Positions 1,763 through 49,853 of a stretch of 64,000 nucleotides of DNA are shown in pieces. The stretch spans positions 155,189 to 219,188 of IMG/VR virus record IMGVR_UViG_3300033388_007730, one strand, 5' to 3'. Below the pieces are notes generated by a model. That model saw nothing but the letters and a program-made list of their open reading frames with translations, did not search any database and had not been told where the DNA came from. Made by a program: the position numbers and the translations under genes. The stretch's first letter is position 1; every line of letters starts with the position of its first letter.

Positions 1763-4400
1763 ATTGGATAGACCTACTATAATCAAAATTTTATCTAAGT
1801 TTAGATATTTATTCCAAGATTTATCTTATGGAGAAGATGCGGTTATGCAAAAGATAACTAACTATCTTCCTTCTAATCATATGGTATTTCCATGCGATGT
1901 AATAGATTTGAGAAAAATACTTATAGATGAAGAAATAAAATTTGATGATTATATACCATTGTTCTCTAAAAGATTTGCTGAGAGTTTTTTAAAAAGATAT
2001 GCTCTGTTTCTGGTGATTGATATAAGAAAGATTGATAAGGATAGTTTTAAATATGGTGGTTTGTGTATTTTAAGAGACAATGAGTTAGATATTAGTGACT
2101 CTTTAATAAGGATAGTAGTTAACAAACAGGCAGCTAATAATACTTTTAATGTGGTGCAAAATATGATGCAAGAATTGAACAAATATGTAGAATGTGTGGT
2201 AGAGAATAGTGTTCCTGGAATGAGTTCTCCTGCCCCTATATTATCATCTAGGAAGATAGTATTTAAAGCAGCTCAGAATGTTGAGTCTGAATTGTCTTTA
2301 GACCCGAAAGAAAAAAATATATTTGATTTTCTTAGAAGGGTTAAAAAAGATTATAATCTTCCTGTTCAGATGAGAGTAGCTGGTGGATGGGTTAGAGATA
2401 AATTGCTTGGCAAAGAAAGTGATGATATAGACATAGCTGTTAATATGCCAGGTTATGATTTTGCTAAGATAGTAGCAGATGCTGCTGTTAAATATAATGT
2501 AACGCATGACCCTAAAGCATACAAGGTTAGTTTAGAAAAATCAAAAGATCCTAGTGAAAAGACTCCTAATGATAGTCTTTTAGTAGGTGCAGTTTATCTT
2601 TTCGGGCAGAAAATAGAATTTGTTCCTATGAGAACAGAACATTATCCTGATCCTGATAGCAGGCAACCAGAAATAACTAATACTAATGATCCTAGAGAAG
2701 ATGTTAAAAGAAGAGATTTAACTATAAATTCTCTTTACTACAATGTTGATACTGGCAAAGTAGAAGATTATGTTGGTGGAAGAAAAGATTTGGGAGTAGA
2801 CGGAAATGGAACTATACTTCTAAGGACTCCTGATGATGCTTATAAAACATTTCATGAAGATCCTTTGAGATTATTGAGAGTTTTGAGATTCCACAGCCGT
2901 TATCCTAATAGCGTAATAGATCCTTCAGTCGTAGAAGCTATGAAAAATCCAGAAGTGCAAGCTTCTTATGCTAGAAAAGTTTCTACAGAGAGAGCTGGAC
3001 CAGAATTGATAAAAATGTTATCAGGAGCAAATCCTGTAGATTCTTTAAGATTGTTATTTGAGAGTGGTTTATACAAACAGGTTTTTGATGTTCCTTCTAT
3101 GAAGAATATAAATGAAGAAGGAATAATGATGGATCAAAGAAGTCCTTATCATGAAAAAAGTTTGTCAGATCATACTCTAGACGTTGTGAAGTACTTGAAT
3201 GAGAAAATGAGTAATGAGGGTGAAAGTGATTTAATGAGAGGATTGATGAATTTTGCTGCTATGTTCCATGATTTTGGGAAAATGAGTAACAAGGTTGCAA
3301 GACCACATAAAAATCCAAGATTCGAAGGTCATACTACTTATGTAGGTCATGAAAATGAATCTGAAACTATGGCAGAAGAAATAATGAATTCTATAGGACT
3401 TAAGGATTATCAAAAAAAGATAGTTAAAGCAGTCGTTAAATCCCATATGTTCCCTCATAAGTTCACTGGTTGGGCTGATTCTTGGGCTAAGAAGAAAAAA
3501 ATATGGAAAGGCAATGAGGGTCCAGGTAAATTTATGGAGAATCTAAAATTAAAAGGTTTAGATCAAAAGACTAGAGGATTAGAAGAAGATGATGAAGAAG
3601 TTATAGATAAGTCTGCTGACCTTTGGAAGTATGTTCATTATCATGCTGAGGCTGATTCTAAGGCTGGTAAAACTGGGAAGCATGATGAAGGGGAAACAGA
3701 GAGAGGTAGACAGTGGTTTGAAAATTATTACAATGATCCAGCTATAGAATTCACCAGAACGAGAGGTTCTGTCATAGATGGCAATACGATAAAAAATCTT
3801 GTTGAAGAAATTAGTGGATTAGAACAGCAAAAAAGGGATCCTACTCGAACTAAATTGAAAGTTGAAATAACACCTAATGTTATATCATTTGTGCAAAAAA
3901 GAATAGCTGATATGCAATATAGGCGTTTGATACCTCTTGATTTCGCGGCTATGGAAGAGGGTCCAGAGAAAGAGTCGTCTTTAATAAATTCTCAAAATAG
4001 AGCTGCTAATCAAGCTAGGCAAATAATCAAAAGTAATTTAGATAAATATTTAAAAATAACTCCAATTGAAGGAGAGACTACAATGAGTACTAGTTGGTAT
4101 GATAAAATAAAAACATCTAATACGATATCTAAACCTTTGCCAGTTCCTCAGGAAGAAGATCCTGAAGTTCATAAGGGGCCACAACCCATGGAGGCAAAAT
4201 ATCAAAAAGGCATGAGGGTTAGAGATAGAAGAAAGGGTTTGGTAGTCCCTCAGGATTTTGGAGTTGTTTATTCTATTAATAATAATACTAATATTATGAT
4301 AATACTATGGAATCCTGATAATAAAGAAAAGAAAAGAGAAGAGAAATTTGATATGGTTGAAGATACCGAAAAGTTGTCATTGATAGTGGCGGAGGTTTAA
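1734..4400 (+). CDS. cca: Class II CCA-adding tRNA nucleotidyltransferase with HD domain and N- and C-terminal extensions
   Basis: RVAGGWVRDKLLG..SDDIDI, RRDLTINS, EDPLRLLRVLRF, HT..V...FHDFGK; start may be TTG 1764. Confidence 0.88.
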   Translation: MVDALEGQDKLDRPTIIKILSKFRYLFQDLSYGEDAVMQKITNYLPSNHMVFPCDVIDLRKILIDEEIKFDDYIPLFSKRFAESFLKRYALFLVIDIRKIDKDSFKYGGLCILRDNELDISDSLIRIVVNKQAANNTFNVVQNMMQELNKYVECVVENSVPGMSSPAPILSSRKIVFKAAQNVESELSLDPKEKNIFDFLRRVKKDYNLPVQMRVAGGWVRDKLLGKESDDIDIAVNMPGYDFAKIVADAAVKYNVTHDPKAYKVSLEKSKDPSEKTPNDSLLVGAVYLFGQKIEFVPMRTEHYPDPDSRQPEITNTNDPREDVKRRDLTINSLYYNVDTGKVEDYVGGRKDLGVDGNGTILLRTPDDAYKTFHEDPLRLLRVLRFHSRYPNSVIDPSVVEAMKNPEVQASYARKVSTERAGPELIKMLSGANPVDSLRLLFESGLYKQVFDVPSMKNINEEGIMMDQRSPYHEKSLSDHTLDVVKYLNEKMSNEGESDLMRGLMNFAAMFHDFGKMSNKVARPHKNPRFEGHTTYVGHENESETMAEEIMNSIGLKDYQKKIVKAVVKSHMFPHKFTGWADSWAKKKKIWKGNEGPGKFMENLKLKGLDQKTRGLEEDDEEVIDKSADLWKYVHYHAEADSKAGKTGKHDEGETERGRQWFENYYNDPAIEFTRTRGSVIDGNTIKNLVEEISGLEQQKRDPTRTKLKVEITPNVISFVQKRIADMQYRRLIPLDFAAMEEGPEKESSLINSQNRAANQARQIIKSNLDKYLKITPIEGETTMSTSWYDKIKTSNTISKPLPVPQEEDPEVHKGPQPMEAKYQKGMRVRDRRKGLVVPQDFGVVYSINNNTNIMIILWNPDNKEKKREEKFDMVEDTEKLSLIVAEV

Positions 4401-5280: not shown

Positions 5281-5799
5281 ATGAATTGGTTTAAAGAGTC
5301 AAGTAATAATGATTTCATAGTTAAAATTAAAAAAATTCTCAAAGCACATCCGTTTACTAAGGCTTTAACAGAATATTACAATATTTCACCATCTGATATA
5401 GATAGTCATTTAGAGATAGAGATAGCAGATTTAGATGGAAAATATGCTGAGGGGAATGGTAGGATTATAAGGTTAAATAAAAAAATGATAAATGAAGATT
5501 TTTTCACTGGTAATTTCCATTTTGTGATACATGAATTTTTTCATTGGCTAAAACGTAGATCTGAAGATAAGTTCTATTTTAATGATCCAGAAGAGATTCA
5601 AAGTTTCGTTCTTCAAATGGCGTGGGAAATTGTGTCTGGTAGAAGTGCTGAAGAAGTTAAGTGTAAGATGCATCCAGTTATAAAAAGTCATTTTAAGAAT
5701 AATGAACAAAAATTTAATATGGTTTTTAAGGAGATGTTAGAAAAAGCCATATATTTGGCTAACATTTATGAGAAAGAAAAGAATTTTTCAATGATATAA
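5281..5799 (+). CDS. Zincin-like metallopeptidase (HExxH) with MNWFK N-terminus
   Basis: VIHEFFHWL with downstream DPEE. Confidence 0.6.
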   Translation: MNWFKESSNNDFIVKIKKILKAHPFTKALTEYYNISPSDIDSHLEIEIADLDGKYAEGNGRIIRLNKKMINEDFFTGNFHFVIHEFFHWLKRRSEDKFYFNDPEEIQSFVLQMAWEIVSGRSAEEVKCKMHPVIKSHFKNNEQKFNMVFKEMLEKAIYLANIYEKEKNFSMI

Positions 5800-26007: not shown

Positions 26008-28380
26008 ATGGAAGATATAAATATCAAATCATTATTACAAGGTGGAATTCGTAAAGATCCAGAAGATGATAGAGATTTTATTTTTACAACACCACATATT
26101 CCTGATCATACTGTCTTGGGAAGTGCTGATTCTATTCCATTAAAAATAGATCATTCTAATAAGATGGGTTCGGTTAAGTTTCAAGGTGCGTTAGGATGCC
26201 ATGATATTAGAACAGAAATACTTACAGAAAAAGGTTGGAAACTATTTAAAGATTTGGATAAAGAAGAAAAAGTAGCTACCGTTAATCCTAATACCCATGA
26301 AATTGAATATCAAGAGCCAATTAATTATTTAGAATATGATTATGAAGGAGATATGTATTATTTTCACCATAAAAGTGGATTAGATGCTATGGTTACTCCT
26401 AATCATAAGATGTATGTCAAGAAATGGGATAATAAAAATATGACATTAAAAGAAGAATTTGAATTCATTGAAGCACAAAATATGGGTTGGTATTCTGGAT
26501 TGTTGACAAAAATTGATTGGGATGGGATCTCTCCCAAAACAATGAAAATGCCAGATGTTGAGATAGGACAAAGAAATGGAAGCAAAAAACAATCTATAAG
26601 AATAGGTAAAGAAATTGATACTACTAATTTCATTACATTTTTGGGATTATATTTAGCAGAGGGCTGTTGTTATCGTCCTGAGGGTAGTGGATCTTACAGA
26701 ATTGAGATCGCCGCTAGTGACAATAATGATAGGAAAAATGAAGTTATTGAAATTATTGATGATTTGCCGTATAAATATACTATTTATCATGATAGGATAA
26801 CAATATGGAATAAATCTTTATATACATTTCTTAAGCCTTTTGGGAATGTTTATACTAAGTCAGTACCAAGATTTGTTATGGATTTGAATAAAAAGGATAT
26901 CGCTGCATTTATGTATGGTTATTATTTAGGAGATGGATCTTTTCATGATAATGGGGCAAGGACAGGGTATTCGGTATCTGAACATTTAATTGATGATCTT
27001 CAAGAACTATCTTTGAAAATAGGGGTATATAGTAGGAAAAAAAGTAGATCACCTAGAATTGCATATATTAAAGGTAGAAAAATTTTTGGTAAAGAAAGTT
27101 ATGAACTTCATGAAAGACAAATAGATACGAAGTTGTCGATAGATAGAAATAAATATTCATCCAAAGTTCCATATAATAATAAAGTATATTGTGTAGAAGT
27201 CCCTAATCACATACTTATTACTAGAAGGGGTGGTTGTATTCTAATTTCTGGCAATTCGTGCGTAGCGTTTGCAGCTTGTGCTTTAAAAGAGTGGCAAGAA
27301 ACAATAGAACATGAAAAGGAAGTTTTGGCAGGGAAAAAAGATCATAGAGAAGGTAAAGAATATAATTTGTCTGAACAGTGGATTTATTGGAATTGTAAAA
27401 AAATAGATCCATGGCCTAATTCTGAAGGAACAAATCTGAGATCAGCTATGAGAGTATTAAATAAGATTGGAGTTCCTACCGAACAAGCTTGGGGTTACAC
27501 TGATGATAAGGTGAACATTGGTGAACCTGAAAGCTGGGCATATATGATAGCAAGGTGGAATTTAATAGGGTCTTATTGGAGAATATCAGGATTAGATCAA
27601 ATTAAAAAAGCATTGATCGAGAGTCCTATTATTATTGGGATGGCTTGTTTTAGAGAAATGTATGGTAATTTAGAACATGGTTTAATACCTTATCCTGCTA
27701 ATCCTGGAGAAGTAATGTCTCATCATGCTGTTTGTGTTGTTGGTTATGATGAAGAGAAAAAACTCTTAAAATTTAAAAATAGTTGGTCTAAGTTCTGGGG
27801 AGATGTTGGTTATGGATATATACCTTATGATTATGTAAGAGATTTTGTATGGGATGCGTGGATTGCTAGAGATATTAGTGTAACTCATGAAATGCTTGAA
27901 GGTACTAGATTATTGGTAGGTGCAGATGTACCAACAGTAATAGAGATAGCTGAGACACCACTTATACAAAAAGATACAGAAGAGAATTTTTCTTTTGTAG
28001 GATTTAAGTATCCTTCTCTTTTAGATACTTTTTCTATTATTAAAGATATTTTTGGAGTTCCAGAAATAGAGATATTTAGAGCTTCTAAAAAGGTGGGAGT
28101 TAAATTAGAAGATTCTTCATCTATTAACTTATTCTGTAAAAAATATTTTGCTGAGTTTAGAAAAGAATCTGTAAAGAAATATGGATTTGAAGTCGATGTT
28201 ATTAAAGTGGATGATGAATATCCAATTATTGGTATTTGTTTGTGTGAAAAAGAAATTAGTGATAAATTTGATGAAAATCAGATAAAGATAGAAGATGTAA
28301 TGAAAAAAGTGGTTGGCATGAGAGATATATTGGCTCTTGGCAAAGATATAATAATTTACAATGGTGTGAGAAAATATTAA
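26008..28380 (+). CDS. Papain-family (C1A) cysteine protease containing an intein
   Basis: After intein removal QGALG/SCVAFA; LSEQWIY, HAVCVVGYD, KNSW...WGD.GY. Confidence 0.9.
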   Translation: MEDINIKSLLQGGIRKDPEDDRDFIFTTPHIPDHTVLGSADSIPLKIDHSNKMGSVKFQGALGCHDIRTEILTEKGWKLFKDLDKEEKVATVNPNTHEIEYQEPINYLEYDYEGDMYYFHHKSGLDAMVTPNHKMYVKKWDNKNMTLKEEFEFIEAQNMGWYSGLLTKIDWDGISPKTMKMPDVEIGQRNGSKKQSIRIGKEIDTTNFITFLGLYLAEGCCYRPEGSGSYRIEIAASDNNDRKNEVIEIIDDLPYKYTIYHDRITIWNKSLYTFLKPFGNVYTKSVPRFVMDLNKKDIAAFMYGYYLGDGSFHDNGARTGYSVSEHLIDDLQELSLKIGVYSRKKSRSPRIAYIKGRKIFGKESYELHERQIDTKLSIDRNKYSSKVPYNNKVYCVEVPNHILITRRGGCILISGNSCVAFAACALKEWQETIEHEKEVLAGKKDHREGKEYNLSEQWIYWNCKKIDPWPNSEGTNLRSAMRVLNKIGVPTEQAWGYTDDKVNIGEPESWAYMIARWNLIGSYWRISGLDQIKKALIESPIIIGMACFREMYGNLEHGLIPYPANPGEVMSHHAVCVVGYDEEKKLLKFKNSWSKFWGDVGYGYIPYDYVRDFVWDAWIARDISVTHEMLEGTRLLVGADVPTVIEIAETPLIQKDTEENFSFVGFKYPSLLDTFSIIKDIFGVPEIEIFRASKKVGVKLEDSSSINLFCKKYFAEFRKESVKKYGFEVDVIKVDDEYPIIGICLCEKEISDKFDENQIKIEDVMKKVVGMRDILALGKDIIIYNGVRKY
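26197..27255 (+). mobile_element. Contiguous intein (353 aa) with LAGLIDADG endonuclease
   Basis: Starts CHDIRTEILT, block B VTPNH, LGLYLAEG and GYYLGDG, ends VYCVEV...SGN before Ser. Confidence 0.92.
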
Positions 28381-40296: not shown

Positions 40297-41097
40297 ATGA
40301 GTAGTAGTTTAATTATACAAGTTAGTGAAATTAAAGACGTAAGAAATCATCCAAATGCTGATAGACTTGATATTATCTCTATTAAAGGTAAAGGATGGGA
40401 GACAATTGTTAAGAGAGATGAGTATAAGGTAGGAGATGTAGTTATTTATATTCCCACAGATGTTATTCTTCCTCTTGAATTGGTAGAGAAGCTTGGGATT
40501 GCGAATTACTTAGCTGGAAAGCAGAAGAATAGAGTTAAGTGCGCAAGACTCCGTGGTGAGATGTCTTATGGTTTGGTTATTCCTAATGAAAAGAATTGGG
40601 AAGTAGGACGAGATGTTGCGGCAGAATTGGGTATTGTAAAATACGAGCCTCCTGTCAGAGCTATGGCTGGTGACGCTGCTCCAGAGGATTCAACTTTTCA
40701 TCGTTATACTGATATTGAGAATATCAATAACTTTCCTGATATTTTCAAAGATGGTGAGATGGTTGTTGCTACAGAAAAAATTGATGGATGTTTTAGATAT
40801 GATCAAAAGGTTTCTCTTGTCAACGGAGAGCAAATTTCTATCTCAGAAGTTGAGATTGGAGATATGGTTCTTTCTTATGATGAAAAAGAGGGCGAATTTG
40901 TGGCATCTAAAGTTGAGGATGTTATTATTCAAAATGTCTCTAAACAATGGGTAGAATTATCGTTTGATAATGGAAAAGAAATTGTTTGTACTGCTGATCA
41001 TTTATTCTTAACTAAGAACAGAAGATGGGTAGAGGCTGGTGATCTGGAAGAAGAAGATGAATTAGTTACGATGGATGAAGAATTTGAAAATAAATAA
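40297..41097 (+). CDS. DRB0094-family RNA ligase N-fragment fused to IntN (40789-41094)
   Basis: HPNADRLD, LRG..SYGL, KYEPP, TEKIDG then CFRYD..CTADH. Confidence 0.88.
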   Translation: MSSSLIIQVSEIKDVRNHPNADRLDIISIKGKGWETIVKRDEYKVGDVVIYIPTDVILPLELVEKLGIANYLAGKQKNRVKCARLRGEMSYGLVIPNEKNWEVGRDVAAELGIVKYEPPVRAMAGDAAPEDSTFHRYTDIENINNFPDIFKDGEMVVATEKIDGCFRYDQKVSLVNGEQISISEVEIGDMVLSYDEKEGEFVASKVEDVIIQNVSKQWVELSFDNGKEIVCTADHLFLTKNRRWVEAGDLEEEDELVTMDEEFENK

Positions 41098-41156
41098 GAG
41101 AATAATCTCTACTGGTTAGAATATATATAGAAAGAGTTAAGCCAGTGGAGATTATT

Positions 41157-41283
41157 ATGGTAAAAAACAATTAAATCTATGTTTAGAATATGGGAAAAAG
41201 ATATAAAAAAAGATTTAATGTCACAGATCGAAAGGATTAGAAGTGAAATTGATAAGAAAAAGGCTGCTCGAACAAAGTTATAA
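41157..41283 (+). pseudogene. Remnant of deleted Vsr/DUF559-like endonuclease between split-intein halves
   Basis: RBS plus MVKNN stop, then FRIWEKDIKK...KL stop overlapping IntC start. Confidence 0.5.
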
Positions 41284-41971
41284 GTGCTGGGATCTAATTA
41301 TTGAAGGAGATCATCATAATTATTTAGTGGAGGGTGCGGTTGTTCATAACAGCAATAATAGGGTAGGTTTTGAGATTTCAGAGCCAGATCAGGATGGAAG
41401 TGTTTATGTTGAAATGAAAGCTGGTTCTAATAAGTTGAAGAGAAAACGTCCTCCAACAGAAAAAATGGCAGAGAATATTTATTGGTTTTCTCAATCTCTT
41501 GACTCTGTGAAGGGGTTACTCAATCATCTTGCTGAAGATGTTGGAGTTAAAAAGACTGTCGTTCTTTATGGTGAGGTTTATGGCAGAGTTCGTGGTGGTC
41601 ATAAGTCTCTTCATTATGGAAAGCCTGGAACTTTGAACTTTGCAGCATTTAGTTTGAAGATTGATGGTAAGTATGTTTCTTGGGATGTTTTTAAACGTCT
41701 GTGTGAGATTTTTGATGTACCTACTGTCCCTGTTGTTGGTATTTTTCCATTTAGCATGGAAAGAGCAAGAGAGTTAGCAACTGGTGATTCTCTTCTTGCA
41801 GCTAAGAATGGCACAAAGCATATGAGAGAAGGAATTGTTCTTTGTGCTTTTGAAGAGAGAGATGAAATGAAGACCAGGAGAGCTATTTTAAAGATGCTTA
41901 ATCCTGATTACCTTATCCTTAAAAATAAGAGTTATGCTAAGGGTGAGGCTACTGATTTTACAGATATGTAA
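41243..41971 (+). CDS. IntC (36 aa, 41243-41350) fused to RNA ligase C-fragment
   Basis: WDL.IEG.HHNYLVEGAVVHN then Ser; YGEVYG, REGIV, LK..NPDYL. Confidence 0.88.
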   Translation: MKLIRKRLLEQSYKCWDLIIEGDHHNYLVEGAVVHNSNNRVGFEISEPDQDGSVYVEMKAGSNKLKRKRPPTEKMAENIYWFSQSLDSVKGLLNHLAEDVGVKKTVVLYGEVYGRVRGGHKSLHYGKPGTLNFAAFSLKIDGKYVSWDVFKRLCEIFDVPTVPVVGIFPFSMERARELATGDSLLAAKNGTKHMREGIVLCAFEERDEMKTRRAILKMLNPDYLILKNKSYAKGEATDFTDM

Positions 41972-41977
41972 TATGAT

Positions 41978-42013
41978 GTTCAGCCTTTGGAGGGGGAGGC
42001 TGAGCATTTTTTT
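41978..42013 (+). terminator. Rho-independent terminator
   Basis: gttcagcct/aggctgagc plus T7. Confidence 0.7.
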
Positions 42014-42029
42014 ATTTGAGAGGTAAGCT

Positions 42030-46895: not shown

Positions 46896-47894
46896 ATGAA
46901 TACAGTTTATAGAGTATCGAGTAACGGGGGAGCACCAGCAAGGGCATCAGTACATAAAGTGTTAGATGGTAGTTCTGGAACACCAATACTCACTTCACCT
47001 GTTGAGAGAAAGAGTGTTGGAGTGGGAGCTTTAAAAGAAGCAGAAAAAATCTGTGATTATCACGATGATGGTGGTGATGAGGATGAGGATTGTTATGCTA
47101 ATCCAACTGGAATTGAAGATAGTTGTTTAAATGAAGATAATGATGTTGCTACTGTGAAGTTTGCGGAAGAGATAAAAGTAGATTTCATTCCGACCGTGGA
47201 TTTTAGAATAATGTGTAGATTTCTTGAAGCTAGTTCTGTTAATGATATTAAAAATCACCCATTCTCTGCCCCACCACTCATAACATTAATCCTCATGGAG
47301 GCATTACCTGGATATATGAAATCAAAAGATTATTCTTTTGCAGGAGAATTAAATTTTGATTGTCATGGTAATTCTATTCCACCAGAAAAAAATCCATGGA
47401 TAGTAGATGGGAAAGAGACAGCATTCACGATTCAAGGATTTTTGTATTTTGAATCTAATAGTGGCAAAAAAGAAGACAATGTTTGTTTCTTCTTATTCGC
47501 AGATTTAGAAAGAGGTGGTGCAGCCATAACATGTTATACTAGAGATGTTTTTAAATCTAAAACTGTTATAGGAGAGTTGCAGGAATATTCAAAGAGTCAT
47601 AATTGCTTGAGAGGTGCTAAGCTTAAAGATGTTAATATGTTCACTGCCTCTTTTACTGAGGTTGATAATTGCCCATCATATAACTGGGAAAATTATTATT
47701 ATCCAAAAAGTATAATTAATTTGTTTGACTTAGAAGTTTTTGAGTTTGTTAAAAACTCTGAGAGATATAATGAGTGTGGCATAACAAAGCGTGGTCTCAT
47801 TATGCATGGTAAACCAGGTTGTGTTTTGTCAGATACAAAAATAAAAATTAGAAAAAAGAAAAAAGAAGGAAAACATAATATTATTATAGAATAA
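46896..47894 (+). CDS. AAA+ ATPase N-fragment fused to 24-aa IntN (47820-47891)
   Basis: KRGLIMHGKPG then CVLSDTKIKI-stop. Confidence 0.85.
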   Translation: MNTVYRVSSNGGAPARASVHKVLDGSSGTPILTSPVERKSVGVGALKEAEKICDYHDDGGDEDEDCYANPTGIEDSCLNEDNDVATVKFAEEIKVDFIPTVDFRIMCRFLEASSVNDIKNHPFSAPPLITLILMEALPGYMKSKDYSFAGELNFDCHGNSIPPEKNPWIVDGKETAFTIQGFLYFESNSGKKEDNVCFFLFADLERGGAAITCYTRDVFKSKTVIGELQEYSKSHNCLRGAKLKDVNMFTASFTEVDNCPSYNWENYYYPKSIINLFDLEVFEFVKNSERYNECGITKRGLIMHGKPGCVLSDTKIKIRKKKKEGKHNIIIE

Positions 47895-47938: not shown

Positions 47939-48853
47939 ATGAAAAAAGAAATGTTTTTGAGAAATTGTCCTAAATGTGGCAAAGAATTAAGTTATACAAA
48001 TAAGAAAAATAGAAATACCGCTATTAAAAAGAAGAGGCTTTGTGGATCTTGTGCTTCGGTGGAGAGGAATCAGAAATATGGTAACAATAAAAAATTTATA
48101 GAAACATATGGGGTAAAAGGGAAGTGGATAGGTAAAAAAAATCCTTTCTATGGGAAACATCATTCTGAAGAATCTCTTGCAAAAATGCAAAAAAATAAAG
48201 ATTTTAGCACTTTTAAAAGTAAAAAGTTTAAAGATAAGATGTCCAAAATATCTTCTGGTAAAAATAATCCTATGTATGGGAAAAATTATTATGATATATG
48301 GGTAGAAAAATACGGGGAGAAAGAAGCCAATAAAAAAATGGCGATACTTAGGAAAGAGAAATCTATTCAGACTTCCGGCAAAAATAATCCTATGTATGGG
48401 AAACCAGCACCACAAGGGTCAGGAAATGGATGGAGTGGGTGGTATAAAGGATGGTTCTTCAGAAGCATTAAAGAATTGTCTTATATGGTAAATGTTATTG
48501 AAGTGAATGGATTTCAGTGGAGAACAGGAGAAACAAAAGATTTATGTATAAAGTATACTAGCTATGATGGGACGGAAAGAACTTATAGGGCAGATTTTTT
48601 AGTCGAGGAGAAAAAGTTAGTTGAAGTGAAACCTATAAAATTGTTTAATACCCCAAAAAATTTATTAAAAAAACAAGCAGCTGTTAAATTTTGTAAAAAA
48701 AATGGTTATGATTATGAGGTAGTTGATGTAAGATTGTTAGATTTTGAAAAAATGGAGAGTCTTTATAATCAAAAAAAGATTAGATTTACGAAAAAATATA
48801 AAAAAAAATATGAGCAATACATAAATAGGAGAAAAAATGATGGAGATAAGTGA
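47939..48853 (+). CDS. Homing endonuclease (NUMOD3-like repeats, TnsA-like PD-(D/E)xK) between split-intein halves
   Basis: GKNNPMYGK x2, FRS..E, YRADF..VEVKP. Confidence 0.8.
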   Translation: MKKEMFLRNCPKCGKELSYTNKKNRNTAIKKKRLCGSCASVERNQKYGNNKKFIETYGVKGKWIGKKNPFYGKHHSEESLAKMQKNKDFSTFKSKKFKDKMSKISSGKNNPMYGKNYYDIWVEKYGEKEANKKMAILRKEKSIQTSGKNNPMYGKPAPQGSGNGWSGWYKGWFFRSIKELSYMVNVIEVNGFQWRTGETKDLCIKYTSYDGTERTYRADFLVEEKKLVEVKPIKLFNTPKNLLKKQAAVKFCKKNGYDYEVVDVRLLDFEKMESLYNQKKIRFTKKYKKKYEQYINRRKNDGDK

Positions 48854-49853
48854 ACAAAAAGTTGTAGCTATTAGTGATTTTTTTAATCTTGTAGAGGACG
48901 AAGGTGGGATTTATGAAGTAGAAACTCCTCAAGGATGGGTAGAAATAGGAGATTTAGTCAAAAAGTCTAATAAAGAATGTTATGCTTTATTAACTGATAA
49001 TTATAATGAAATTAGAGGATCTAATGATCATTATGTGGAGACTAAAAGAGGGTGGGTAAAATTAGAAGATATAGATGTTAAGAATGATATTGTTTATACC
49101 GATGAAGGAGAAGAATTAGTAGTCTCTTTAGAAAGTATTGGAGTTCATGATACATTTGATTTAGAAGTTTTAAATGATGAGCATAAATACTATGCCAATG
49201 GAATTGTTAGCCATAATACAGGAAAAACAACAATTGGTAATATCATTTGTAATATGATACCAGATCATACCGTTATATGGATAACTCCTGAAATTTTAGC
49301 GGAGAATATGCATCGTGCTTTTAATTCTATTAAGTCATTATATAAATTGGCAGATTTTGTTTCTCCTTGTGTTATTATACTTGAGGATTTAGATTTATTT
49401 GGCAATGATCGAGACAAAGGTGGAGATATATTATCTCTTGGTGCTTTGATGAATGTTTTAGATGGTGTCAATTCTATTAAAAACGCTGTTACAATAGGAA
49501 CTACTAATAGATTAAGTTCCATTGAATCAGCTTTGAAGAATAGACCAGGAAGGTTTGACAGAGTTATAGAAATACCAGCACTTCCGAAAGAATTGAGAAA
49601 GAAGATGTTCAGAGATAGATTAAAAGGATGGACTGTTGAAAAGGGTGCATTGGATTATATCGTTGAGAACACTAATAAATGGACTGGAGCAGAAGCACAA
49701 GAATTTATCAATAGTTTGAATTTGAAACATATTGGCAGTAATAAGAAAAAGAAGAAAGTTACTATAGTGTGGGCAGAAGAGATTATCAAAACTATGAATA
49801 AATTTGGAGTGGGAGAAGCAAGTAGTTCATTCGGATTCGGTGCTGATAAATGA
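48837..49853 (+). CDS. IntC (127 aa, 48837-49217) fused to AAA+ ATPase C-fragment
   Basis: V.TPQGW, SNDH, FDLEV..H.YYANGIVSHN then TGKT; ILEDLD, TTNR, NRPGRFDR. Confidence 0.9.
   Translation: MMEISEQKVVAISDFFNLVEDEGGIYEVETPQGWVEIGDLVKKSNKECYALLTDNYNEIRGSNDHYVETKRGWVKLEDIDVKNDIVYTDEGEELVVSLESIGVHDTFDLEVLNDEHKYYANGIVSHNTGKTTIGNIICNMIPDHTVIWITPEILAENMHRAFNSIKSLYKLADFVSPCVIILEDLDLFGNDRDKGGDILSLGALMNVLDGVNSIKNAVTIGTTNRLSSIESALKNRPGRFDRVIEIPALPKELRKKMFRDRLKGWTVEKGALDYIVENTNKWTGAEAQEFINSLNLKHIGSNKKKKKVTIVWAEEIIKTMNKFGVGEASSSFGFGADK

Follow-up and report, generated by a model that had tools for sequence, protein, structure and literature searches.

A putative split intein directly after motif I of a phage DRB0094-type RNA ligase, with the apparent relic of a lost homing endonuclease between its halves

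Introduction

Could a phage RNA ligase be encoded by two separate genes, the products of which are joined by a split intein? This question is raised by a window of 64,000 nucleotides (the whole stretch of DNA that was analysed), which corresponds to bases 155189-219188 of the 219-kb linear IMG/VR virus record IMGVR_UViG_3300033388_007730, with a CheckV completeness of 44%. The original prediction, made from this sequence alone, had placed in it a natural split intein within a DRB0094-type RNA ligase, composed of a 102-amino-acid (aa) N-intein at the end of one gene and a 36-aa C-intein at the beginning of another. The two open reading frames (ORFs), termed here the N-half and the C-half, occupy 40297..41097 and 41243..41971 on the + strand. 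In our view, the locus very probably holds a split class 1 intein directly after motif I of a phage Rnl5-type RNA ligase, in a gene that was fractured by a free-standing endonuclease since deleted, and its product would be a trans-spliced ligase. Related loci and proteins are denoted below by L and P numbers, and a slash in a sequence marks the boundary between extein and intein or the splice junction.

The Two Halves and the Rebuilt Ligase

The features of the two halves are listed below.

40297..40788, + strand: N-extein, residues 1-164 (PF21189, TIGR02306 and PDB 5COT matches)
40789..41097, + strand: N-intein, 102 aa, from Cys1 (C165) to ...EEFENK, plus the TAA stop (TIGR01445, Hint/Intein_splicing)
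41243..41350, + strand: C-intein, 36 aa, blocks F and G, ending in VVHN (sequence and alignment)
41351..41971, + strand: C-extein, 206 aa from Ser+1, the rest of the nucleotidyltransferase domain plus the stop (Pfam RNA_ligase, TIGR02306, alignment)
41975..42018, + strand: terminator-like hairpin (41975-42008) and T-run after the C-half (terminator scan)

The N-half (266 aa) reads ...VVATEKIDG up to residue 164, after which the N-intein begins with C165, that is, TEKIDG/CFRYDQKVSLVNGEQ...VCTADHLFLTKNRRWVEAGDLEEEDELVTMDEEFENK and a stop (CFRYDQKV...TADH...EEFENK). Its N-extein comprises an N-terminal OB-fold module and the start of the nucleotidyltransferase domain, and ends at motif I, TEKIDG, in which K161 (codon 40777-40779) is the adenylylation lysine. 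Pfam reports the PHA02142 OB-fold PF21189 (E 3.3e-14) as well as Hint/Intein_splicing, and the NCBIfam model TIGR02306 (RNA_lig_DRB0094) is matched over profile positions 5-187 (E 6.8e-37, 127.1 bits). The N-extein also matches the Naegleria gruberi RNA ligase (PDB 5COT, residues 31-175) with an E of 1.8e-13, and this match stops at residue 165 of the N-half. From there on, residues 165-239 are covered by TIGR01445, the model of the intein N-terminal region, with 32.0 bits against a cut-off of 24.5; Pfam Hint scores 41.8 bits against 29.7, and PF14890, searched with the N-half alone, gives 34.4 bits, slightly short of its 35.8-bit cut-off. Block B of the N-intein is TADH (residues 232-235). 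An alignment of 14 homologues has Cys1 (C165) in every sequence, and T232 and H235 in 90% or more of them.

The C-half (242 aa) begins with a GTG codon and consists of the 36-aa MKLIRKRLLEQSYKCWDLIIEGDHHNYLVEGAVVHN followed by SNNRVGFE... The terminal His-Asn is followed by Ser, Thr or Cys at position +1 (HN/S, HN/T or HN/C) in 16 of the 16 loci examined, the window reading VVHN/S. In the C-half, Pfam RNA_ligase (E 9.2e-15) and TIGR02306 (profile positions 193-339, E 1.1e-9, 37.6 bits) are matched; a sequence search of the C-half alone against solved structures gave no match. The stretches LYGEVYG, FAAFSL, REGIVL and ILKMLNPDY are conserved with intein-less orthologues in the alignment. From their alignment positions and from what is known of the superfamily, we take them to be motifs III, IIIa, IV and V, respectively.

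What would the joined product look like? Four intein-less orthologues (P0011, P0012, P0014 and P0020) read TEKIDG/(S or T)N(x)R(x)GF and align without a gap to the joined exteins of the window, P0011 being 85% identical over the N-extein. The empty site is found on a marine-metagenome contig, which joins 40787 to 41354 via TAGT, giving GGT AGT AAT, that is, G-S-N. In P0124 (488 aa), a relative with a contiguous mini-intein, about five residues bridge the intein pieces where the window is split. The equivalog cut-off of TIGR02306 is 151.15 bits, and both P0011 (176.6 bits) and P0124 (173.3 bits) exceed it. Consequently, the original prediction stands in its main lines: the 102-aa N-intein and the separate gene with a 36-aa C-intein are both read at the coordinates listed above, the rebuilt KIDGSN junction agrees with the gapless orthologues, and the assignment as a DRB0094-type ligase is borne out by the TIGR02306 matches in both halves and by the orthologues past the cut-off. 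The intein had been placed inside motif I; the site is right, and its exact position has to be corrected to directly after motif I, between G164 and Ser+1.

Judged from these matches, the locus is thus a predicted class 1 intein, split at the canonical site (102 + 36 aa) as in Npu DnaE and gp41-1, in a phage DRB0094/Rnl5-type ATP-dependent RNA ligase. The Rnl5-type ligases DraRnl (DR_B0094 of Deinococcus radiodurans) and NgrRnl (Naegleria gruberi, 5COT) share the domain order, an OB-like module followed by the nucleotidyltransferase domain; however, they are single polypeptides without inteins, unlike the ligase of the window.

Is the Split Genuine and Maintained?

The N-half and C-half are in different frames, and in the frame of the N-half the 145-bp spacer between them contains three stops (TAA, TAG, TAA). 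Therefore, neither a single frameshift nor a recoded stop gives a contiguous intein, and stop-codon recoding through the spacer is ruled out. In the word-indexed protein search, N-halves with the same architecture turned up nine times, at lengths of 259-267 aa and 56-83% identity, and all of them end a few residues past the last strand of the N-intein and within a few residues of each other. The exhaustive search covered 1.84 billion representatives of 50%-identity clusters and returned 8,809 hits. Among the best 150, which were classified, 43 are split N-halves, about 24 have a contiguous intein or another large insert at the site, and 74 are intein-less. Related loci gave no match when a single protein was the query, and an alignment query was used instead; independent assemblies from ENA, JGI, Logan and IMG/VR have the same split architecture. 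For example, L011, an independent assembly, contains the N-half, 96 nt and the C-half, with phosphoribosyltransferase and IMPDH-like genes downstream as in the window.

Purifying selection acts on the N-intein: compared with L094, the nearest relative (83% aa identity), its ratio of nonsynonymous to synonymous substitution rates (dN/dS) amounts to 0.21, and that of the N-extein to 0.085, dS being 0.6 and not saturated. For complex prediction, residues 155-266 of the N-half and 1-50 of the C-half were used as input, and the score was 0.68, a mark reached by 51 of 78 solved complexes and by 2 of 108 mismatched pairs; the best of three controls scored 0.00. In the model, residues 1-35 of the C-half touch the N-intein, which supports the predicted association of the two intein pieces. 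The many assemblies with the same N-half end, the purifying selection on the N-intein and the complex model that passes its controls thus agree with the earlier claim that the split is natural, and speak against an artefact.

Then, could the halves bind via their intein pieces without any splicing, the ligase being a non-covalent heterodimer? The complex model speaks for association, not for chemistry, and there is a reported precedent in a phage ribonucleotide reductase that was fragmented by a mobile element and is assembled without splicing (PMC3045599). However, Cys1, the Thr and His of block B (at least 90%), the terminal HN and the +1 nucleophile have been kept among the relatives, which is unexpected if binding alone mattered, and about 138 aa of intein would stay wedged beside the adenylylation lysine. 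Such a heterodimer appears improbable to us. Putative trans-splicing of a co-transcribed two-gene ligase, by contrast, is well supported by the sequence, its conservation and the modelling. Co-transcription is suggested because the sole terminator-like site called by the scan follows the C-half, with none called between the two halves.

The Spacer between the Halves

Three further features lie in the spacer, the last of them running into the C-half.

41101..41156, + strand: stem-loop of 17 bp just after the N-half stop (inverted repeat 41101-41115/41142-41156, 93% complementary)
41157..41174, + strand: stub ORF of five codons, MVKNN and a stop (read from the sequence; same place relative to the hairpin as the endonuclease start of L012)
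41179..41283, + strand: 34-codon relic, C-terminus of a Vsr-like (DUF559/MTES_1575-type) homing endonuclease (BLASTP against the L012 endonuclease)

The 161-nt hairpin region folds at -32 kcal/mol (z = -6.0), and none of 200 shuffles was as good. GGAG in the 3' arm of the hairpin (41147-41150) ends 6 nt short of the ATG at 41157, and comparable strong hairpins precede the intact endonuclease genes of L012, L020 and L031. We read the hairpin as the relic of a translational control by which the lost endonuclease gene had its ribosome-binding site and start codon sequestered, and the stub ORF that follows as the presumable start of that deleted gene. As an intrinsic terminator the hairpin is ruled out, having no T-run and not being called by the scan. 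It should be noted that a second, weaker inverted repeat (41170-41219, 16 nt, 88% complementary) is present in the relic region upstream of the ribosome-binding site of the C-half.

The relic VWEKDFYNNPVKQIERIKDEISKKR matches IWEKDIKKDLMSQIERIRSEIDKKK of the L012 endonuclease (residues 246-270 of 273 aa) at 13 of 25 positions with a BLASTP E of 2e-7. Both signals for translation of the C-half, its ribosome-binding site (AAAGGA, 41231-41236) and its start codon, lie within the relic ORF, which extends 41 nt into the C-half from 41243 on; in L012, the C-half likewise begins at 5638, ahead of the endonuclease end at 5669. This start context is conserved in L011 and L012. We infer an internal deletion of the endonuclease ORF in the window, in which the last 30 codons or so were probably kept because they hold the ribosome-binding site and start of the C-half. 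Analogous relics are found in the spacers of L011 (96 nt) and L026 (158 nt). The window and L011 both retain about the last 30 codons, with upstream breakpoints about 12 nt apart, and the intein tree leaves their clade unresolved; L026 belongs to a separate intein clade (support 100/99), and therefore the endonuclease has been lost at least two times. The ORF 3801-4100 (99 aa) between the halves of L017 is the C-terminal DUF559/MTES_1575 part of an endonuclease. By its sequence, L017 is a likely intermediate state of decay, the endonuclease being intact in L022, whose intein is near-identical.

Three stops, the 5-codon stub and the 34-codon relic plainly mark the spacer as wreckage, and the C-half starts with GTG. 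Could the whole gene be dead, that is, could the invading endonuclease have inactivated the ligase and later been deleted, so that the two ORFs are decaying pseudogene fragments? Both ORFs, however, are intact with all splicing residues and ligase motifs present, and the dN/dS values against the nearest relative are those of 0.085 (N-extein) and 0.21 (N-intein) given above. Moreover, 43 of the best 150 clusters (50% identity) retain this split, and the start context of the C-half is conserved in L011 and L012. A dead gene is accordingly a quite unlikely account of the locus. An assembly or sequencing artefact of a contiguous mini-intein like that of P0124 is hardly credible: the window junction comes from one assembly and contiguous mini-inteins do exist at the site (P0124, L046 and L070), but the artefact would need the loss of about 145 bp with three in-frame stops plus a change of frame, the spacer is recognisably homologous to the endonuclease gene and hairpin of relatives, and the ENA, JGI, Logan and IMG/VR assemblies are concordant. 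This concordance, which takes the place of a check with source reads, answers the concern about assembly that came with the original prediction.

Nevertheless, several points weigh against a trans-spliced ligase from a fractured gene. The C-half initiates at GTG, and its orthologues use ATG at the same MKL... start. Each scored alone, the two halves of the window (127.1 and 37.6 bits) fall under the TIGR02306 cut-off of 151.15. For most pairs dS is saturated, and consequently selection on the short C-intein is poorly measured. In L094, the gene after the N-half (848-1015, the contig ending 56 codons into it) encodes a small membrane protein and is neither a C-half nor an endonuclease; therefore, linkage of the halves is not universal, and in L094 they may be uncoupled. 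The N-intein weakly resembles the NrdJ-1 and gp41-1 inteins in the sequence search of solved structures, and the complex prediction may owe its pass partly to the model's memory of such solved split inteins. Finally, the search of sequencing runs gave only two marine metagenomes, with 5% of the sampled words, and reads of the source sample were not among them. The marine reads that fall on the window come from relatives at 80-95% likeness, including an intein-less allele, with a depth of zero over 41137-41304. Therefore, the junction of the window itself rests on a single assembly.

With these points in mind, the following history of the fractured ligase gene can be proposed. A mini-intein would have been present after KIDG, and a Vsr-like endonuclease gene with a hairpin-controlled start would have been inserted in the loop where inteins usually carry their endonuclease, splitting the gene. 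A later internal deletion would have removed nearly the whole endonuclease ORF, with the 5' hairpin, the ribosome-binding site, the ATG and the last 30 codons or so as survivors. At present, the halves would be co-transcribed, the 102-aa and 36-aa intein pieces would associate, and Cys165, the TADH block, the terminal His-Asn and Ser+1 would perform trans-splicing, releasing a ligase of about 370 aa with the junction KIDG-SN. Only after splicing would K161 and motifs III-V be on one chain. It is thus plausible, as had been proposed, that ligase activity depends on co-expression, with the catalytic lysine encoded in one gene and motifs III-V in the other.

States of the Insertion Site among Relatives

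What occupies the same site in other loci? In L012, L013, L016, L020, L021, L022, L031, L042, L062 and L072, the N-half and C-half flank an ORF of 248-341 aa, and in at least L012, L013, L020, L021, L022, L062 and L072 this ORF has Vsr/DUF559/MTES_1575-type matches, mostly under the Pfam cut-offs. The intervening genes of L012 and L013 are homologous to each other (E 6e-33). In IMG/VR contigs, the same site, after K-I-(D or H)-G, holds LAGLIDADG-containing inteins in L028, L036, L043 and L048 and mini-inteins in L046 and L070. The intein tree contains at least three deep intein lineages at the ligase site. In summary, the states seen there are the empty site, the mini-intein, the LAGLIDADG intein, the gene fractured with a free-standing Vsr-like endonuclease, the truncated endonuclease and the endonuclease lost.

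In addition, a C5 cytosine DNA methylase gene is identified by Pfam (E 5.6e-71) between the RNA-ligase halves in L027:3868-5558, alongside a 252-aa ORF without a family match; the methylase is cargo inside a fractured gene.

The Same Cassette in Other Ligase Families

Is the cassette confined to Rnl5-type ligases? P0098 (200 aa) is the N-half of an NAD+-dependent DNA ligase, reading ...VVTPKIDG/CFTFDSKVMLANGE..., and at 54% identity its N-intein is nearer to that of the window than are the allelic RNA-ligase inteins of L013 (26%) and L017 (32%). Its locus, L096:4001-7228 (also L097 and L098), is a fractured LigA gene with the cassette after the KIDG of motif I. The L096 C-intein is 41% identical to that of the window, and the L096 Vsr-like endonuclease is 43% identical to that of L012 (E 8e-74). 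The LigA loci therefore share with the window a homologous site, after KIDG, and a related cassette; they differ in the extein (Nlig-Ia, DNA_ligase_aden, OB and BRCT), in Cys and not Ser at +1, and in their intact endonuclease. Possibly, the ‘DNA ligase' locus described by Dassa et al. is of this kind. A related intein is also found in a third type of extein, in L062, where it interrupts a phrog_548 RNA ligase without an OB module.

In the intein tree, L096 and L062 fall in the clade of the window with moderate support (80/92). The tree is no proof, and together with the sequence comparisons it suggests that the cassette may have moved between ligase families via the shared motif I. A more tentative proposal, which we hold to be possible and somewhat doubtful, is that intein and Vsr-like endonuclease form one mobile element homing to motif I DNA (TEKIDG/TPKIDG, the slash here separating alternatives) across Rnl5-type, phrog_548 and NAD+-dependent ligases, and that in the window, where the copy would be immobilised, the 3' end of the endonuclease and the hairpin have been exapted as a signal for translation initiation and coupling of the C-half. 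If this were true, relic control elements of the endonuclease would set the production of the ligase.

The Source Genome and Its Other Inteins

The window is AT-rich (about 32% GC), with nearly all genes on the + strand, and the source record is apparently part of the genome of a large environmental phage. A blastn search of the ligase locus against 50,697 phage records gave no match; therefore, no GenBank phage is close at the DNA level. With tblastn, matches were limited to distant intein-less phage RNA ligases of less than 40% identity. The window contains no tRNA genes, and consequently there is no local link to tRNA repair. The source genome carries at least three split and at least three contiguous inteins, and for such an intein-rich phage the split-intein ligase locus is ordinary.

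The original prediction also pointed to another split intein in the window, with a different split site, and this is found in an AAA+ ATPase fractured at the Walker A motif (HGKPG/.../TGKTT). The AAA+ N-half (46896..47894) ends in HGKPG/CVLSDTKIKIRKKKKEGKHNIIIE and a stop, with an N-intein of 24 aa (Cys and 23 residues), and in the C-half (48837..49853) the intein takes up about 127 aa, to IVSHN/TGKTT, compared with 102 + 36 aa in the ligase. The gene between them (47939..48853) is an intact endonuclease with NUMOD3 and a TnsA-like nuclease domain, which overlaps the start of the C-half. As far as its sequence tells, the AAA+ locus is a classical fractured gene with a putative atypically split intein. 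Atypically split inteins with a short N-piece include AceL-TerL, GOS-TerL and VidaL, and their likeness, the 24-aa N-piece, is to the AAA+ intein only. The AAA+ and ligase inteins are 30-36% identical in alignable blocks; given this low identity and the different split topologies, it is plausible that the two are orthogonal, as had been supposed.

Outside the window, the genome encodes a third split intein, hosted by a DnaE-like Pol III alpha (G000:C1 ~68674-71152; L003:558-3036), with an N-half ending in ...ANFG/CLAANT..., a C-half reading ...NIVVHN/CHAAG and 28 nt between the ORFs. This intein, the endonuclease wreckage in the ligase spacer and the fractured-gene class of the ligase locus had not been recognised in the original prediction. 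Two further proteins encoded outside the window contain a contiguous intein, a UvrD-like helicase (997 aa, L001:715-3708, G000:C1 ~78969-81962) and, at its P-loop, a clamp-loader/DnaX-like ATPase (901 aa, L004:286-2991, G000:C1 ~146942-149647). Within the window, a 790-aa ORF (26008-28380) encodes a papain-family (C1) peptidase with a LAGLIDADG intein (...QGALG/CHDIRTE...ILISGN/SCVAFA), whose site looks like the active-site cysteine motif, an unusual host for an intein.

Comparison with Known Fractured Genes and Implications

Then, how new is the locus? Fractured genes of environmental phages have been described for gp41-1, gp41-8, NrdJ-1, IMPDH-1, DnaE, NrdA, DNA ligase and terminase (Dassa et al., 2009, PMC2677866). 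In that study, hairpins occur in 15 of 16 loci, and gp41-7, where the endonuclease has been lost (‘step III'), retains one; the endonuclease-lost stage has been described there (PMC2677866), as have the arrangement, the hairpin and the family of the endonuclease. The window resembles these genes in several respects. A canonically split intein interrupts a conserved enzyme gene at a catalytic motif; the relatives of the window have a free-standing Vsr-like endonuclease gene between their halves; and the 3' end of the endonuclease overlaps the start of the C-half, with a hairpin sequestering the endonuclease start region. The closest case is gp41-7, in which the hairpin was left upstream of the C-half after the loss of the endonuclease. 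The window differs in its host protein, a DRB0094/Rnl5 RNA ligase outside the eight enzyme types of Dassa et al., and in that a recognisable 3' remnant of the endonuclease supplies the translation start of the C-half. A free-standing endonuclease gene between the halves is found in L012, L013, L020, L021 and L022 and not in the window; with only a stub and a relic in its 145-bp spacer, the window therefore fits the derived ‘endonuclease lost' stage and not the defining fractured-gene arrangement.

The full-text literature search for intein, RNA ligase and phage gave nothing on inteins in ATP-dependent RNA ligases, and in a 2025 preprint on actinobacteriophage inteins the only ligases listed are of the RtcB type. 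Since the arrangement is known, the RNA ligase is outside the enzyme types of Dassa et al. and the literature gave none, the host protein is new and the kind of locus is known.

Based on the sequence and modelling, an RNA-repair enzyme would join the short list of proteins known from natural trans-splicing. To specialists on inteins, it is not the locus of the window itself that matters but how large the family is, that the series of decay is complete and that RNA and DNA ligases share the cassette. The family of canonically split inteins is large and previously unremarked, with at least 43 clusters at 50% identity, Cys1 and Ser+1 and a small G/S junction, and it could supply new orthogonal tools for protein ligation. 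One insertion site shows every stage of the life cycle of an intein and its homing endonuclease, and this series is good natural material for testing the gene-breaking model of Dassa et al. The cassette common to RNA and DNA ligases is a candidate case of an intein that switched its host protein via a shared catalytic motif.

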